64,000 nt of DNA from Octopus vulgaris (Eukaryota), in assembly GCA_951406725.2 (NCBI GenBank), contig OX597832.1:64976001-65040000 (forward strand), written 5' to 3'. The stretch's first letter is position 1; every line of letters begins with the position of its first letter. The position numbers and the translations under genes are program-made. Positions 5,305-38,298 of the stretch are shown one piece after another. The notes under the pieces are model-generated. The model did not search any database, was not told where the DNA came from, and saw only the letters and a list, made by a program, of their open reading frames with translations.

Positions 5305-5870
5305 GGCGTAAGAGTGGTTGTGTGGTAAGTAGCTTGCTTATAAAACATGGTTCCGGTTTCAGTCCCACTGCGGAGCACCTTGGGCAATTGTCTTCTACTA
5401 TAGTCTCGGGCCGACCAAAGCTTTGTGAGTAGATTTGGTAGACGGAAACTGAAAGAAGCCCATCGTAGATATGTATATATATATATATAGTTAATCCAAA
5501 CATGAAAACACAAAGAGAAAATACAACAACGCGAGGATGTGGAACAAGTATAGTGTTATTGGATGCTCAGGAAAGGAAAGAAAGAAGGAGGATTTAACGT
5601 TTCGAGAAGAGCTATTCGTCAGAAACATAGGAAAAGGAAAGATATATATATATATATATATATATGTAGGTGTGTGTATATGTTTGTGTGTCTGTGTTTG
5701 TCGCGCCAACATCACTTGACAACCGATGCTGGTGTGTTTACATCCCCATAACTTAGCGGTTCGACAAAAGAGACTGATAGAATAAGTTCTGTGGTCGATT
5801 TGCTCGACTAAAGACGTTGCTCCGGCGTGGCTACAGTCAAATGACTGAAACAAGTAAAAGAGTAAAAGAA
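5305..5870 (+). mobile_element. SINE family C, full length, with internal TA/TG tract
   Basis: tRNA-like head GGCGTAAGAGTGGTTGTGTGGTAAG..GGTTTCAGTCCC, CORE-like GCACCTTGGGCAA and tail CAGTCAAATGACTGAAACAAGTAAAAGAGTAAAAGA. Confidence 0.88.
5592..5626 (-). ncRNA. Minimal type I hammerhead ribozyme motif (family IV), one stem II lesion
   Basis: Minus strand reads GTTT-CTGACGA-A-TAG CTCTT CTC-GAAAC-GTT-AAAT. Stem I is GTTT/AAAT and stem III is the palindrome AACGTT. Confidence 0.6.
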
Positions 5871-6143
5871 TATACATATATATCTATATATGTATGTATG
5901 TATATGTATGTATGTATGTATGTATGTATGTATGCATATATGTTTGTGTGTATGTATATATGTATGTATATATGTATGTATGTATGTATGTATGTATGTA
6001 TATATATATATATATGTGTGTGTGTGTGTGTGTATGTGTATATATACATATACACATACATACATACATACATATATATATACGTATACATACATATATA
6101 TATATATATATATATATATATATATATATATATATATATATAT
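5871..6143. repeat. (TATG)/(TG)/(TACA)/(TA) compound microsatellite
   Basis: Direct reading. Confidence 0.95.
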
Positions 6144-6171
6144 AAAAGAAGCGTCAGAAAATTTAAATATA

Positions 6172-7062
6172 CGTTGGGGTACACACAAGTATGAGGAAAA
6201 ATTTTCCTTGAGACAAAGCCATTGTAGTTAAGGCTTCCGCCGGTAGAAGCCACTTGATGCAATACTGGCGTCGTCGGTTGCAGGACGCATGCTACATGGT
6301 GCGTCTTTGTTTTGCAGAGCTTCTTCCCTCTTCGTCGAGTTTTTGTTGATGGCCGAAACGAAAGAACAGCGTTCTTCCGTAAATTTCTGTTTTCTGCTGG
6401 GGAAAACGGCGGGCGAAGCAGTTGTCCTGTTTCAGACAGCTTACAATGACGCGGTCATGAGAAAATCACAAGTCTACAAGTGATTTCCACTCTTTGGGAA
6501 TGATGTATTGTCGCATGAAGATTCATCTCTTTCGAAACGACCGTCGATCTGAACAAATGAAAACATCATGAAGATTCATGAATTGAGCTTAGAGGACTGT
6601 CACTGAACAATTGATGAACTTGTTGATATGACTGGTGTGTCCCGGAACTCCTGCCAACGAATTTTGAGCGAGGAATTGCGATTGAAAAGAGTTGCAAAAT
6701 TTGTGCCGCGCATGCTCACGGAAGATCAAAAGCAGTCGCGACAGAATACGTGTCGTGAACTGAAAGAACAACTCGAAGTTGATCCGGACCCTTTTTTTTA
6801 TATTTTCGAAGGGCTTCGCTGGTGACGGAAGCTGATGCTATAGAATTTGCAGATGTAGAACAAGTGAAGAAAAAAACGTGGGAGGCGTTAAAAGGCATCA
6901 CTTCGCAAAAGTTGCGGGACTGCTTCGAACAATGGAAACGCGTCTGCACCAATGCATTGCGTCAAATGAAGAATACTTTGAAGGCGATAAAAGTGTAAAC
7001 ATGTAAAACTAAGTGAATAAAATAACATCGCAAAATCCCGGTTTCTTTTGGGTACCCCTCGT
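6172..7062 (+). mobile_element. Tc1/mariner element, internally deleted
   Basis: TA-flanked imperfect TIRs (TA|CGTTGGGGTACAC.. and ..GGGTACCCCTCG|TA). Transposase pieces MAETKEQRSSVNFCFLLGKTAGEAVVLFQTAY, QRILSEELRLKRVAKFVPRMLTEDQK and a C-terminal FEQWKR..YFEGDK are present. The catalytic core is missing near 6800. Confidence 0.9.
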
Positions 7063-9479
7063 AATACACACACACGCACGCACCCCCACACACGCATACA
7101 TGTATCTATAAATAGTGTTGACAGTTATCTATGTTTGTGATCAGCCTCTCTCAGTCTCACTCTCTCTGTCTGCCTTTCTTTTTTCTGTTTCTTTATCTGC
7201 CTATATAAATGTATACTTACACACACACACACATTCACTCATTCAAGATCTATATGTCTATGACTCCAGTGTAAAGCATGTGATTAGTTTGCGACGTCAT
7301 TTGTCGTTTCAGTTTGGCCATCGTCATTCATTATTCATCTTTCACTGAGAAGTACAACTGGCCAGACAAGGCTGAATGTACGTCACCTTTTGGTATGGGG
7401 TTGTAATGCTTATTACCACAGACAGATAGACAAACAGACAGACACACACACACACATATACTTACGCTGACATTCACATACATTAATATACTTACATTAT
7501 ATACATATATTGATGTGTTTCTATATATATATATATATGAATGTGTATGTGCATGTACATATGTATTTTTGTATATACATATATATATATATATATGTGT
7601 GTGTGTGTGTGTGTGTGTGTGTATGTGTGTGTGTATAGATTTGAATGTAGAACTGTGTATGTGTGTGTGTGTGTATAGATTTGTATGTAGAACTGTGTAT
7701 GTGTGTGTATAGATTTGTATGTACAATTCTGTGTGTGTATGTGTGTGTAATTATAAGATATAATATAGAATACACATGGATATATGCCTATACATACTCC
7801 AGAATACACATACACATTAGAGAAATGAAGGAGAGATCGGAGCGGATTTTGGTGAGTGAATATGAGAGAGAAAGAATAAGAAAGAGAAAGTGGGAGAGAG
7901 ACAAAACATAATCAGAGCCACATGGAATGGTATGATGAGATGCAGCAATGGAATTAGATAAATAATAAAGAAGAGAAAACGTATCCTTGTCTGACCCATT
8001 GACATCCTATTACGACACCTGACCGCTATCAATGTTCTCTCTACTATTCATACATCACTTTCTACTGACCTTTTAGCATTTGATAATCAGTCTCCATCAC
8101 CTCACATAGCTCCACCACCACCAACATCGCCGCCGTCGCCAGCAACGGCAACATCAGAACAACAAAAGCCAGTTCAACGGCGATGTGATCGGCAGCTGCT
8201 ATCACGAGAACTAACACCGCCTTCATCACTCTGTATATCTATCAACAGCACCCGCTCCGGCTAAAACAGAATGACAGCCACAACACACGACTGCTATGAA
8301 CTAAACAACATGCCACAATGTGGTTGCATCGGTTTGTAGTGGTATAGCTAGACTGTATAACCCAGGGTTGTACTTTAGTTTGTTTCCCTCTTTTACAAAC
8401 TTAGACCAGAGACGAAAAGTTATTGCTCGGGCGGACTGGTCCCATCACACTCCTAGTTGTGCTTCTGTCCCTTCCTACAAATAAAGAATACCACATTGTC
8501 TAATTTAAACCGGGTTATGATTGTATCTCGGTTGAACTTGACGATGACTAGCTAAGATGTTTCCTTTTTGCCAATCTCGATTTCGATCCTATTAGGTAAC
8601 ATCTTGGACAAATATTTTCCTTTTTTATTCAACTAAAAAAATCTCTTGAACGAGTTAACAAGACAGTTGTTGAGTATTCCCTGAACACAACTTCAAATAA
8701 CGTAATTTTCAGGCAGACACTTTAGCGTGACACAATATTTGACAAAGATAGATCTTTGAATTGCAGTTACAATACAGCCCACGGGCATCAGCACTGTTTC
8801 CATTAATCTAATTTCTCTTACAGTCCAGGGCCAACCCAAAACAATCTTAAAGGATACAAGTTTGTCTGCGTTGCCACCCAGTTGGAAAGGGCGTGTGATT
8901 TGCGAAGCGAAATTCTTACGAATTTGGTCATACTGCTTTGTTATGGTAAGGAGTAAGTTGTATTTTAAATCAATGGCTTGGTCAAGGCTGGAAAGTCATT
9001 TTATAATACGTGTGCTGGATCAAAGCTAACAATAATTTATAACATAAATTATGACCTCCAGGAACTGTATCATCTACTATCATTTCCGAAACAACTACTG
9101 GTAGCAGCAGCAGCAGCAGCAACAGGAACGACATCATCACCATCAGAAAATTTATAACCACAACTAAAAGCAGCAACGAATAAAATAAAACCTGAAGGTG
9201 AAGAACATCAAAGAGCATTATGTAGCCACTCGGATATTGAAGAAATGGCAGCCAAATAGTCAGTAAATCTTACAATACCGTCTTAAACCAGGAAGAACAT
9301 ATTGGACAGTATAAACACGTGACCAAATCGAACAATTACAAGAACTGAACGTACGTGAACATAGTTGCAGTTGCAAAGCAACTAAAGGAATATATTAGCT
9401 GGTCCATTTAAGGGAAATTTTTTATAATCTGAGTCGATTGTAAAAACAGCAAATGTTTTCGGATGACTTATAATCCGCT

Positions 9480-36949: not shown

Positions 36950-37180
36950 GTATTTCTTCGTCATGTTGGATACAGCGTTCAAGGGTGTTAATGAAGGATT
37001 AAAGTTTAAATACAGAACTGGTGCTGGCTTGTTCAACCAACAGCACTTCGAAGCAAAAGCTAAGATTTTGGCGCAAACATTTCGAGATTTGCTCATCACT
37101 GACGATTGTCCACTTGTATCCCACACTCTTGAGGACATGCGATGGATTCTAATCAGCGTCATGGTTTTGAAATTCATCTA
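36950..37180 (+). mobile_element. RTE-clade LINE reverse transcriptase fragment
   Basis: GLKFKYRTGAGLFNQQHFEAKAKILAQTFRDLLITDDCPLVSHTLEDMR resembles the RTE/BovB-type YRTDGxLFN..AKTK..RDLLFADDCAL.AH. Confidence 0.8.
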
Positions 37181-37650
37181 ACGACATGCCCTAAGTCTGA
37201 CAGATATATATATATATAGTGGAATAATCTTAGTTACTGGATTATCTAAACTAACACACATAGATATCTAAACTAACTGCTTGTGGAAGTATCCTGAAAG
37301 TGGTTGAATACTCTTAATAAATCTCCACAAGCAGAATCAATAAGTCTCAGCATATAACAACACCAGAGAATTGAATTCTAGGTAGAATCCATTCTATGAG
37401 TGTCTGAGCAGTTTCCATCCAAATTCACTCATAAGTATTGGGTCTGCTCAGGGCTTTGGTAAAGTGGCAATTAGCAAAAGTGCCTGTGAGTGAAGTCTAT
37501 ACCAGGACCTCAGGAGAGAAAGCTATGCTCCGTCTATTGCTCCTGTACACGCATACATGTTATTTATATCTATGTGTGTTATGTACGTATGCATGCATCT
37601 ACGCAGGTATTTAAATTCATTTTTTGAGGAAGGTGCATTAATACAGATAT

Positions 37651-37900
37651 TAAGGCGCATCATTAAGGCTGGCAGAAATATTAGCACGCCGGGCGAAATG
37701 CTTAGCGGTATTTCGTCTGCCGCTACGTTCTGAGTTCAAATTCCACCAAGGTCGACTTTGCCTTTCATCATTTCGGGGTCGATTAAATAAGTACCAGTTA
37801 CACACTGGGGTCGATATAATCGACTTAACCCGTTTGTCTGTCCTTGTTTGTCCTCTCTGTGTTTAGCCCCTTGTGGGTAGTAAAGAAGTAGGTGTTTCGT
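37651..37900 (+). mobile_element. SINE family A, full length
   Basis: GCTGGCAGAAATATTAGCACGCCGGGCGAAATG..CCCCTTGTGGGTAGTAAAGAAGTAGGTG. Confidence 0.9.
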
Positions 37901-37904
37901 CTAA

Positions 37905-38298
37905 TACAGTTCTATATTTAAGAGATGAGGAATTTTGTACATTATTTACATTATTTACATTTGATGGATATTTGTCCTCATCTTATTTGTTGTTAACACA
38001 GTGTTTCGGCTGATATGCCCTCCAGCCTTCATCAGGTGTCTTGGGGACATTTCGAACCTGGGTTCTCATTCCTAAAGTATTTTTCGATGTAATTATTATT
38101 ATTATTATTATTATTATTATTATTATTATTATTATTATTATTATTATTATTATTATTATCATCATTAGGAATGCGAACGCAGGTTCGAAATTTCCCCAAG
38201 ACACCCGATGAAGGCTGGAGGGTATATCAACTGAAACGTTGTGCTAATAGCAAACAAGACGAGGACAAATATCCGTCAAATGTAAATAACGTAAATAA
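37905..38298. mobile_element. Hammerhead fold-back element, copy 2 (arms around (TTA)n)
   Basis: Same arms as 33639-34027. Hammerheads lie at minus 37995-38040 and plus 38200-38245. Confidence 0.85.
37995..38040 (-). ncRNA. Hammerhead family I
   Basis: Minus strand GACAC-CTGATGA-A-GGCTG GAGGGCATAT CAGCC-GAAAC-ACT-GTGTT; the cleavage triplet is mutated. Confidence 0.65.

Follow-up and report, generated by a model that had tools for sequence, protein, structure and literature searches.

Putative PLE-type minimal hammerhead modules in fold-back and single insertions of an octopus genomic window

Hammerhead-shaped motifs and their carriers

The window analysed here, a 64-kb stretch of octopus DNA, contains eleven hammerhead-shaped motifs, all of which (11/11) were located at the coordinates given by the original prediction. 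Pairwise comparison of the sites detected homology only between the two family IV sites (z = 10.6), all other pairs giving z ~0, and the four families previously distinguished are genuine and mutually unrelated in sequence. As had been described, the inverted pairs point outward from their centre, the minus copy always lying left and the plus copy right. The following features were assigned by sequence comparison:

5483-5642, minus: family IVa element, ~160 bp, (TA)n on its flanks; motif 5592-5626
14723-14881, plus: family IVb element, 5'-truncated from a ~225-bp unit, (TA)n at its end; motif 14753-14789
21866-21917, minus: family II fragment, left arm of a small inverted pair; motif 21879-21914, GAAU, U16.1 lost
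21942-22104, plus: family II 3' fragment, right arm of that pair; motif 22021-22056, core and ACCGGU intact, helix I gone
22249-22843, minus: 3' UTR of a Penelope-like element (PLE) of family II, truncated at the 5' end, 88% identity over 586/605 nt of a long copy (L056); motif 22306-22341
23013-23528, minus: C-terminal coding remnant of a GIY-YIG endonuclease (Pfam and tblastn), from the same PLE
23573-23923, plus: inverted, 5'-truncated family II partner, head-to-head with 22249-23528; motif 23832-23867, inner GCGG, palindrome lost
31666-31922, minus: family III left (inverted) arm
32298-32625, plus: family III right arm and 3' tail, 96-98% identity to other copies; motif 32326-32384
33642-33790, minus: left arm of fold-back 1, a tailless family I SINE body covering body positions 1-148; motif 33690-33735, GAGA replacing GAAA
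33791-33869: (GTT)n(ATT)n separating the two arms of fold-back 1, internal SINE microsatellite, both tRNA-like heads missing
33870-34027, plus: right arm of fold-back 1, a family I SINE body covering body positions 24-181 and bearing the 27-nt tail; motif 33901-33946, C11.1>U and C15.2>A
37905-38090, minus: left arm of fold-back 2, a tailed family I SINE body covering body positions 5-181; motif 37995-38040, CGUU changed to CACU
38091-38164: (ATT)n separating the two arms of fold-back 2
38165-38299, plus: right arm of fold-back 2, a tailless family I SINE body covering body positions 20-154; motif 38200-38245, U4>C

The string CTGANGA..GAAA occurs 16 times in the window compared to 3.1 expected occurrences. 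Forty rounds of dinucleotide shuffling of the window, amounting to 2.56 Mb, produced no match to the full minimal-hammerhead descriptor, which corresponds to a false-positive rate below 1 per 2.5 Mb. For families I and II the consensus passes this descriptor, and a consensus-like IVa copy also fits the published PLE minimal hammerhead; none of the window copies passes, each carrying at least one lesion, and the Rfam hammerhead models matched none of the sites at E <= 10. All conserved core positions and H17 are retained in consensus I, II and IVa, as is the palindromic 15.2-16.2. Eight unrelated modules preserve a common architecture via compensatory changes, and in each family the hammerhead-like module lies 70-115 nt upstream of the 3' end. 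The motifs show the traits published for PLE minimal hammerheads (PMC4209133), namely an additional nucleotide following A9, pairing of G10.1 with C11.1, the palindromic 15.2-16.2 and a U3-A8 covariant; this, together with the presence of such a motif in autonomous PLEs of this genome, substantiates the proposed link to PLEs. The eleven motifs are genuine though mutated copies of the small ribozyme module borne close to the 3' end by PLEs and by their short parasitic derivatives, the self-cleavage of which module is a prediction.

All motif families are high-copy in the 2.8-Gb host genome. First-look candidates at 94-98% identity numbered at least 1,677 for family I, 1,029 for II, 1,380 for III and 1,353 for IV, and exact consensus motifs were counted 1,218 times for I, 5,014 times for IVb and 2,693 times for IVa, the reversed controls for these three yielding 0. 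The window is probably an ordinary piece of the octopus repeat landscape, rich in insertions by the PLE machinery.

Anatomy of the four families

In family II the core reads UUGAAAA (U3-A8) and not CUGANGA. The 3' end of the element at 22249-22843, whose motif is such a U3-A8 minimal hammerhead, adjoins (TA)n, and the neighbouring coding remnant matched Pfam GIY-YIG (E = 5e-5, cut-off passed) and, by tblastn, PLE ORFs of this genome (51-54% identity, E 1e-45 to 1e-49). Genome-wide, the endonuclease segment gave at least 16,656 first-look candidates, some of the scored copies having open frames of 781-814 aa. At 24 of 30 endonuclease-bearing PLE loci a U3-A8 minimal hammerhead follows 450-900 nt past the stop codon, and the autonomous PLE hammerhead is situated ~95 nt upstream of a (TA)n-embedded 3' end, ..TTTTTTACAAATATA(TA)n. 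Family II therefore does not fit the description of these copies as ORF-less: it represents the 3' UTR of an autonomous PLE truncated at its 5' end, with an endonuclease remnant inside the window. The parent is likely Neptune-like, with a CX2-5CxxC linker and a GIY-YIG endonuclease, a (TA)n target and mostly 5'-truncated copies. Among the 30 sampled PLE loci, no autonomous PLE had a 3' end matching family I, III or IV.

Within family IV, the two sites differ in their cores. The IVa module reads CUGACGA-A-..-GAAA-CG-UU, with helix II decayed in the window copy, and its core is canonical genome-wide (of the 2,693 exact copies, the first 100 listed include 98 with A6). The IVb core reads CUGUGGA, with U replacing A6; among the first 100 listed of its 5,014 exact copies, 98 have U and none has A at this position. 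The conserved A6 is lacking in IVb genome-wide. Variation within IVa and within IVb is concentrated at the naturally variable position 7. IVb is a ~225-bp non-autonomous element and IVa its shorter homologue. Family III, at least 600 bp in length, has an irregular helix II, an additional A separating 11.1 from G12, and the near-palindromic AUCCGGGAU noted earlier; its inverted partner (31775-31856) no longer has the hammerhead core, which was lost in a 39-nt deletion.

Family I has the apparent anatomy of a SINE, in which a 73-nt tRNA-like polymerase III head is followed by an internal (AAT)n and then by the 181-nt body that contains the hammerhead. The head shows an A box (8-18) and a B box (52-62), and the sense strand is free of TTTT; neither ARAGORN nor the Rfam tRNA model recognised the head. 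The proposal of non-autonomous elements accordingly holds for family I, with its A/B-box head, and for IVb, with its ~225-bp unit of fixed 5' end. Microsatellites adjoin the motifs as described, and both (TA)n flanks and 5' truncation were recorded for these elements. This association has two sources, namely insertion into (TA)n for II, III and IV and an internal repeat for family I, the (TTA)n of which is part of the SINE and not an anchor site.

Origin of the fold-backs

About two-thirds of the sampled family I copies are head-to-head dimers, and all pairs in the loci and among the matches listed are minus-left/plus-right with abutting heads. Direct repeats of at least 7 nt surround the whole dimer at 11 of 17 loci compared to 8 of 272 mismatched controls, their length varying from 7 to 14 nt, and at 15 of the 17 loci the 27-nt tail is present at one dimer end only. 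The junction position and the end-points of the arms vary from locus to locus. The position of the duplications around the dimer as a whole, the outward-facing 3' ends and the restriction of the tail to a single end show that each fold-back is a single PLE-type integration event. The suggestion of an inverted pLTR-type integration product was also borne out, as the single-unit fold-backs match the published PLE pattern (PMC8557442).

Taken as a whole, the data are probably best explained by insertions of the PLE machinery that bear PLE-type minimal type I hammerhead modules. Both DNA ends of a staggered break would prime reverse transcription and the two cDNAs would then be joined at their 5' ends, the inserted copies subsequently decaying neutrally, presumably chiefly at CpG sites. 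In autonomous PLEs the motif might, as proposed in the literature, act as a dimer in the processing of read-through transcripts. Among the short derivatives it may be retained within the 3' module used by the PLE enzyme, and cleavage may be dispensable, as the U6 of IVb suggests.

A retrozyme-like mode, in which active hammerheads cleave as dimers via the palindromic stem III, this cleavage is needed for mobilisation by processed or circular RNA, and the ribozyme is masked within fold-back transcripts that serve as ADAR or Dicer substrates, appears unlikely. It would agree with the features kept in consensus I, II and IVa, with the clustering of IVa/IVb changes at position 7 and with the weak dimer cleavage of PLE minimal hammerheads in vitro (PMC4209133; Lunse et al. 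as cited in PMC6765202). The predicted fold-back hairpins are very stable (MFE -190 to -490 kcal/mol), and in a survey with octopus data young repeats were the main ADAR targets across animals (PMC9989829). Nevertheless, minimal hammerheads are reported to have low activity in vitro, the most abundant counted family, IVb, carries U6, and a palindrome-broken variant, GAAAAGUU, is frequent in family I (8 of 47 arms). Cleavage would, moreover, separate the polymerase III head of family I from its RT-priming 3' end, and both promoters of a dimer fire outward, hairpin RNA thus requiring external read-through transcription. The label "retrozyme-like" was rejected as tandem arrays are absent from the window; partial tandems occurred at only 2 of 30 family I loci.

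Very improbable is an origin as ordinary LINE-dependent SINEs, with hammerhead shapes arising by chance and fold-backs produced when elements insert independently into one another's microsatellite tails. Octopus genomes contain hundreds of unclassified SINE families (PMC13282606), Rfam found neither hammerhead nor tRNA, and the arms of a dimer are no closer to each other than to arms of other loci, although this test has low power in so homogeneous a family. However, chance hardly accounts for a motif that, at the above false-positive rate, recurs in several unrelated families and autonomous PLEs at a common distance from the 3' end, and independent insertions leave the duplications around whole dimers and the uniform head-to-head arrangement unexplained. 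In the headless window fold-backs the inner repeat is (ATT)n on one strand across both arms, which is not expected from independent tail-primed insertion. Least probable of all are MITE or Foldback-type DNA transposons moved whole by a transposase: the long inverted arms, the flanking direct repeats and the 87% identity of the two window fold-backs in direct orientation resemble such elements, but the repeat length is not fixed, junctions and arm ends differ across loci, the arms are asymmetric with a single-end tail, the sense strand carries polymerase III boxes, and headed monomers exist, one (L013) flanked by a 7-nt direct repeat.

Comparison with known systems

No description of the octopus families was found in the searchable literature; the octopus instance is new, the kind of element being already known and both the fold-backs and the microsatellite links being familiar consequences of its mode of insertion. 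With the minimal type I hammerheads of PLEs (Cervera & de la Pena 2014, PMC4209133) the motifs share the core boxes, a short helix I (3-5 bp), the unpaired nucleotide between A9 and G10.1 (I, IVa and IVb), the G10.1-C11.1 pair, a palindromic 15.2-16.2 (CG, CCGG or CAUG) and the U3-A8 covariant, here in family II and the autonomous PLEs of the genome. Many sequence families per genome and opposite-strand pairs 100-700 bp apart are further common features, and dimer cleavage of such hammerheads is ascribed to Lunse, Weinberg & Breaker in PMC6765202. Unlike the published examples, IVb has U6 in thousands of copies and family III has an additional A inserted between 11.1 and G12, and helix II measures 4 bp in II and IV compared to 7-8 bp in the schistosome reports.

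Known features of PLE insertions (Craig et al. 2021, PMC8557442; Arkhipova 2006) that recur here are strong 5' truncation, an inverted copy adjoining the 5' end, a short tail at a single end, a hammerhead close to the 3' end and a (TA)n target bias tied to the CX2-5CxxC linker. Family I differs in that dimers predominate and, the unit being a short SINE, its arms are often full length and meet at the tRNA-like heads. It resembles the schistosome retroposons Sm-alpha and Sj-alpha (Ferbeyre 1998; Laha 2000; PMC2770079, PMC6765202), which are likewise short and non-autonomous, number thousands of copies and combine a tRNA-type polymerase III promoter with a hammerhead on the sense strand. The Sm-alpha hammerhead, however, is canonical, Rfam-detected and often tandem, whereas family I has a PLE-type minimal motif missed by Rfam, an internal microsatellite and head-to-head dimers. 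Finally, metazoan non-LTR retrozymes (Cervera & de la Pena 2020, PMC7229834; bioRxiv 10.64898/2026.07.22.740005), proposed to be PLE-dependent, are similarly short, ORF-less and AT-rich, bear type I hammerheads and co-occur with PLEs, but they form head-to-tail tandem repeats yielding circular RNAs, whereas the octopus units are dispersed monomers or inverted dimers.

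Hammerhead motifs in the window and across the genome

All eleven hammerhead-like motifs of the original prediction were relocated exactly, at 33690, 33901, 37995 and 38200 (family I), 21879, 22021, 22306 and 23832 (family II), 32326 (family III), 5592 (family IVa) and 14753 (family IVb). The window is AT-rich and microsatellite-dense, and CTGANGA-N(4-34)-GAAA occurs in it 16 times compared to 3.1 occurrences expected. A descriptor was written after the published minimal hammerhead of Penelope-like elements (PLEs). It requires helices I and II, a core with C3-G8 or U3-A8, the GAAA box, a palindrome at 15.2-16.2 and H17 directly after U16.1, and it tolerates one additional nucleotide behind A9; it returned 0 matches on 40 dinucleotide shuffles of the window (2.56 Mb). 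None of the window copies of the four families passed this descriptor, because each of them bears at least one lesion. The four family I copies show GAGA for GAAA, C15.2>A, CGUU>CACU and U4>C, the family II copies show GAAU, loss of helix I, and CCUG or GCGG for CCGG, and helix II has decayed in the IVa copy. An additional motif at 14415-14467 (-), with the U3-A8 core UUGAAAA, the inner palindrome CAUCGAUG and C17, passes the strict descriptor; its helix II depends on G.U pairs, and it belongs to no repeat family of a 290-kb sample.

Rfam hammerhead models (RF00163 and relatives) gave no match in the window at gathering score, nor on the eleven sites cut out of it at E <= 10, and a covariance search of the 2.8-Gb assembly (227 contigs) with RF00163 yielded only 6 matches over the cut-off; this model does not see minimal hammerheads. 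The strong Rfam miRNA matches in the window (mir-297, mir-466 and mir-3149) all fall on (TG)n, (TA)n or (TGTA)n, for example at 46550-46830 and 59816-59900, score below their own gathering thresholds and are microsatellite artefacts. A whole-window repeat search was likewise swamped by microsatellites, and dust-masked self-BLAST was used instead.

First-look candidates in the whole genome numbered at least 1,677 for family I, 1,029 for family II, 1,380 for family III and 1,353 for family IV, and the 40 copies scored per family were 94-98% identical to the window copy. Exact matches were obtained 1,218 times for the 39-nt family I motif, 2,693 times for the IVa motif and 5,014 times for the IVb motif when any base was allowed at positions 6-7, each with 0 matches for the reversed control. 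Whether the core survives in the genome-wide consensus had been named as a check in the original prediction: in consensus or consensus-like copies the core boxes are intact in families I (CUGAUGA), II (UUGAAAA, U3-A8), III and IVa (CUGACGA), and IVb lacks the canonical core (CUGU[U/G]GA). The descriptor search proposed along with it, once extended to genome copies, bore the motif out for the consensus of families I (GACAC-CUGAUGA-A-GGCUGG..UCAGCC-GAAA-CG-U-U-GUGUU) and II (CAG-UUGAAAA-GGUC..GACU-GAAA-CCGG-U-A-CUG), which both pass, as do 9 of 30 genome copies of the former and 25 of 30 of the latter.

An extra unpaired A between A9 and 10.1 is present in families I, IVa and IVb, and a G10.1-C11.1 pair in families I, III, IV and the autonomous PLEs of the genome; family II has no extra nucleotide after A9, and its 10.1-11.1 pair is G.U or A-U. 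The self-complementary stem III claimed for families I, II and IV was confirmed, the palindromic inner 15.2-16.2 being CG in I and IV and CCGG in II (CAUG in autonomous PLEs), as was the near-palindrome UCCGGGA in family III. Position 17 is U, A or C (H, not G). Pairwise tests found only IVa and IVb to be homologous (z = 10.6; z ~0 for all other pairs). Eight sequence-unrelated modules share one architecture, which compensatory substitutions in all three helices and at positions 3-8 have preserved. Helices I and II are retained in the predicted minimum free energy (MFE) structure of the motif monomer.

Family II and the autonomous Penelope-like elements

A genome search for GIY-YIG endonucleases returned at least 5,955 candidates, many with open frames of 781 aa. 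In 24 of 30 sampled PLE loci a U3-A8 minimal hammerhead (AUUUU-UUGAUAA-GGUUC..GAACC-GAAA-CAUG-U-A-AAAAU) was found on the sense strand 450-900 nt past the stop codon, lying ~95 nt upstream of a 3' end ..TTTTTTACAAATATA that continues into (TA)n. A 37-nt stretch of the window at 51318-51354 (-), within the palindromic microsatellite block 50894-51568, matches this common autonomous 3' end at 97%. Unusual cores were seen in the endonuclease sense at three genome loci that represent other PLE lineages: L075 (about 2370-2420) has CUGAAGA, inner GUAC and G at position 17, L093 (about 2500-2560) has inner CCGG, GCAA for GAAA and a 3' end resembling family II, and L092 (about 2040-2090) may have an A3-U8 core (AUGAAUA..GAAA-CCGG-UC). 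Since these are single copies, the deviations may represent decay.

The 5' end varies among copies of family II and the 3' end ..TTTTTTCATATA is constant, with (TA)n to either side. One of them lies next to PLE coding sequence.

PLE-related features accompanying family II in the window
22974-23345 (-): open reading frame with a GIY-YIG domain match
23528-23013 (-): PLE coding remnant, aligned to PLE open reading frames (ORFs) of the genome at 51-54% identity, E 1e-45 to 1e-49
22249-22843 (-): family II copy with the endonuclease remnant directly upstream
23573-23923 (+): inverted, 5'-truncated family II partner of the 22249-22843 (-) copy

Within the window, the 5'-truncated endonuclease remnant accompanies family II only. 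At least 16,656 first-look candidates for this segment were returned genome-wide; the scored copies show 78-88% identity, with open frames of 781-814 aa in some of them. The sampled PLE ORFs contain the linker CGRPNCGIC, and the window remnant aligns to the region containing it. This linker is of the CX2-5CxxC type, for which an association with (TA)n targeting has been described (PMC8557442). Database relatives of the octopus ORF carry RVT_1 and GIY-YIG domains, with best matches of at most 60% identity and no close octopus PLE in a large protein database. The named relatives derive from bivalves and from bacteria-labelled bins (Candidatus Thiodiazotropha, Solemya symbiont) and are annotated as "GIY-YIG nuclease family protein"; the PLE-like entries in bacterial bins look like host retroelement DNA in symbiont bins.

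Family II is the 3' end of a PLE, derived from autonomous elements. The assignment to PLEs was right in kind, as autonomous PLEs of the genome carry the motif and the family II remnant is a GIY-YIG endonuclease; the view of the copies as lacking an ORF has to be abandoned for family II, with the remnant lying directly upstream. No coding partner of family I, III or IV turned up among the 30 sampled PLE loci or when PLE ORFs were aligned to the window.

Family I and its fold-backs

Read in hammerhead sense, the family I unit begins with a 73-nt head, continues through an internal (AAT/GAT/CAA)n and closes with a 181-nt body that ends ..TAAATATAGAACTGTA. Scored against the A- and B-box consensus, the head contains an A box (TGGCGTAGTGG, positions 8-18) matching at 11 of 11 positions and a B box (AGTTCGATTCC, positions 52-62) matching at 10 of 11, at tRNA-type spacing. 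TTTT is missing from the sense strand of the head and present on the antisense strand. ARAGORN, even at -ps70, detected no tRNA in the loci, the window or the head consensus, and the Rfam tRNA model gave no match at E <= 10, so that it is the boxes and their spacing which point to a tRNA ancestry; the cloverleaf stems are degenerate. Judged by its predicted promoter boxes, family I is a polymerase III-type SINE. An alternative orientation, as an opposite-strand SINE with an (ATT)n tail, was dropped, the tRNA-like head lying upstream in hammerhead sense. Given the internal repeat of the unit, both window fold-backs have the SINE's own repeat, (TTA)n, at their centre, and not the microsatellite anchor that the original prediction took it for. 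Both heads have been lost in these two fold-backs.

Each fold-back represents a single insertion. An inverted partner is present in about 20 of 30 family I loci, in every case with minus left and plus right, and ~12 of these are full head-to-head dimers with abutting heads, the position of the head junction varying among loci. The whole dimer is surrounded by direct repeats no shorter than 7 nt, the longest reaching 14 nt, in 11 of 17 loci compared to 8 of 272 mismatched controls, and the window dimers have similar flanks, CATCC[T/G]TA for the first (33642-34027) and GGTRTTTC.. for the second (37905-38299). The last 27 nt, the tail, are present on one arm only in 15 of 17 dimers and likewise in both window dimers. 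In this homogeneous family, identity between arms is 0.909 within dimers and 0.905 between loci, a comparison that does not discriminate for or against co-insertion. The minus-plus order was also observed in families II, III and IVb and in the endonuclease-bearing copies, and families II and IV show further PLE-type insertion traits, namely 5' ends that differ from copy to copy and (TA)n to either side.

Both DNA ends of the break probably prime cDNA synthesis, the two cDNA products then being joined head to head. We tentatively propose, giving it somewhat less than an even chance, that family I is a PLE-dependent polymerase III SINE whose default integration product is a full-length head-to-head dimer with one target-site duplication. 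If this is true, family I, with arms in the order of 10,000, represents a short and abundant natural reporter of how PLEs integrate, a process in which priming appears to start from both break ends. SINE dimers with target-site duplications and a one-sided tail provide countable junctions for testing resolution by the PLE endonuclease/reverse transcriptase. Repeats reportedly make up 66% of the published Octopus vulgaris genome and SINEs 11.6%, with 893 SINE families unclassified (PMC13282606), and no description of cephalopod hammerhead families was found in the searchable literature. For annotation, palindromic repeats of the family I type can be read as single insertions, and several unclassified octopus SINE families can be assigned to a Penelope-like system.

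Families III and IV, cleavage and comparison with known systems

Genome loci of families III and IV were thinly sampled. The family III unit comprises an inverted 5'-truncated arm and a full arm with a ~95-nt tail, and sits in (TA)n or (CA)n. Helix II of this family forms only with an additional A ahead of G12, and in the window the core is gone from the left arm. The IVb unit is ~225 bp long, with a constant 5' start (GCCATGATAGATCGCTAGCC..) and (TA)n at its end. Its derivation from the family II 3' UTR by internal deletion was ruled out (z ~0). A6 is a conserved core nucleotide of the hammerhead and sensitive to mutation in classical mutagenesis. Among the first 100 exact copies listed for each family, position 6 is A in 98 for IVa, compared to U in 98, C in 2 and A in 0 for IVb (core CUGU[U/G]GA), and IVb has therefore spread without a canonical core. 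As a sister case to the proposal made for family I, and with the same chance, IVb would show that U in place of the conserved A6 does not keep a family from reaching thousands of copies, and the "ribozyme" module would be kept for a role other than cleavage, for example in recognition by the reverse transcriptase. The pair of IVa (A6) and IVb (U6) offers a natural contrast for whether cleavage matters in the spread of the element.

Several other repeats accompany these families. A hammerhead-free head-to-head fold-back at 26460-26904 has ~100-nt arms ending in (TA)n, and its short sequence recurs at 23927-24021, right after the family II copy ending at 23923, and beside the IVb copy of genome locus L079; it probably represents another family that targets (TA)n. 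A ~230-bp repeat (..GAGTTCAAATTCCGCCGAGGTCGAC..) occurs at least six times (4998-5237, 18631-18869, 21283-21518(-), 27387-27601, 37668-37900 and 38302-38420), often as 1.5-mers, with 84-92% identity among the longer copies, and the second family I fold-back is inserted within one of them. Four copies of a ~400-bp repeat, at 11563-11946, 17888-18316(-), 26988-27364 and 34856-35209, are 77-82% identical.

Variation in family I is centred on two CpG sites, with C11.1>U in 17 of 47 arms and CG changed to UG, CA or AG, a sequence pattern that neutral decay would leave. Cleavage at the predicted site would part the promoter head from the 3' end, and the in-vitro activity reported for minimal hammerheads is low (PMC4209133). 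On these three grounds, a strict need for cleavage in the short elements appears unlikely. Read-through RNA over the fold-backs, if made, is predicted to form very stable hairpins (MFE -190, -201, -79 and -490 kcal/mol) that might serve as substrates for ADAR or Dicer, and young repeats have in general been linked to RNA editing (PMC9989829).

Metazoan non-LTR retrozymes are made of tandem head-to-tail units 170-400 bp in length that each carry a type I hammerhead, and they are expressed as small circular RNAs. Dust-masked self-BLAST and copy mapping revealed no tandem arrays in the window, and among the 30 family I loci only partial tandems were present, in L004 and L019; the label "retrozyme-like" therefore does not fit the arrangement of the window. 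The closest precedent of family I is Sm-alpha/Sj-alpha, a tRNA-type SINE with a hammerhead (PMC2770079, PMC6765202), with which family I shares internal A and B boxes at tRNA spacing but not a recognisable tRNA head. Minimal hammerheads of PLEs are characterized by an extra nucleotide after A9, G10.1-C11.1, a palindromic 15.2-16.2 and covariant U3-A8 (Cervera and de la Pena, PMC4209133), all of them traits shown by the octopus motifs, and occur as opposite-strand pairs 100-700 bp apart (PMC4209133). PLE insertions have been described in which an inverted copy adjoins the 5' end and a short tail is confined to one end (Craig et al., PMC8557442), and the family I dimers match this arrangement exactly.
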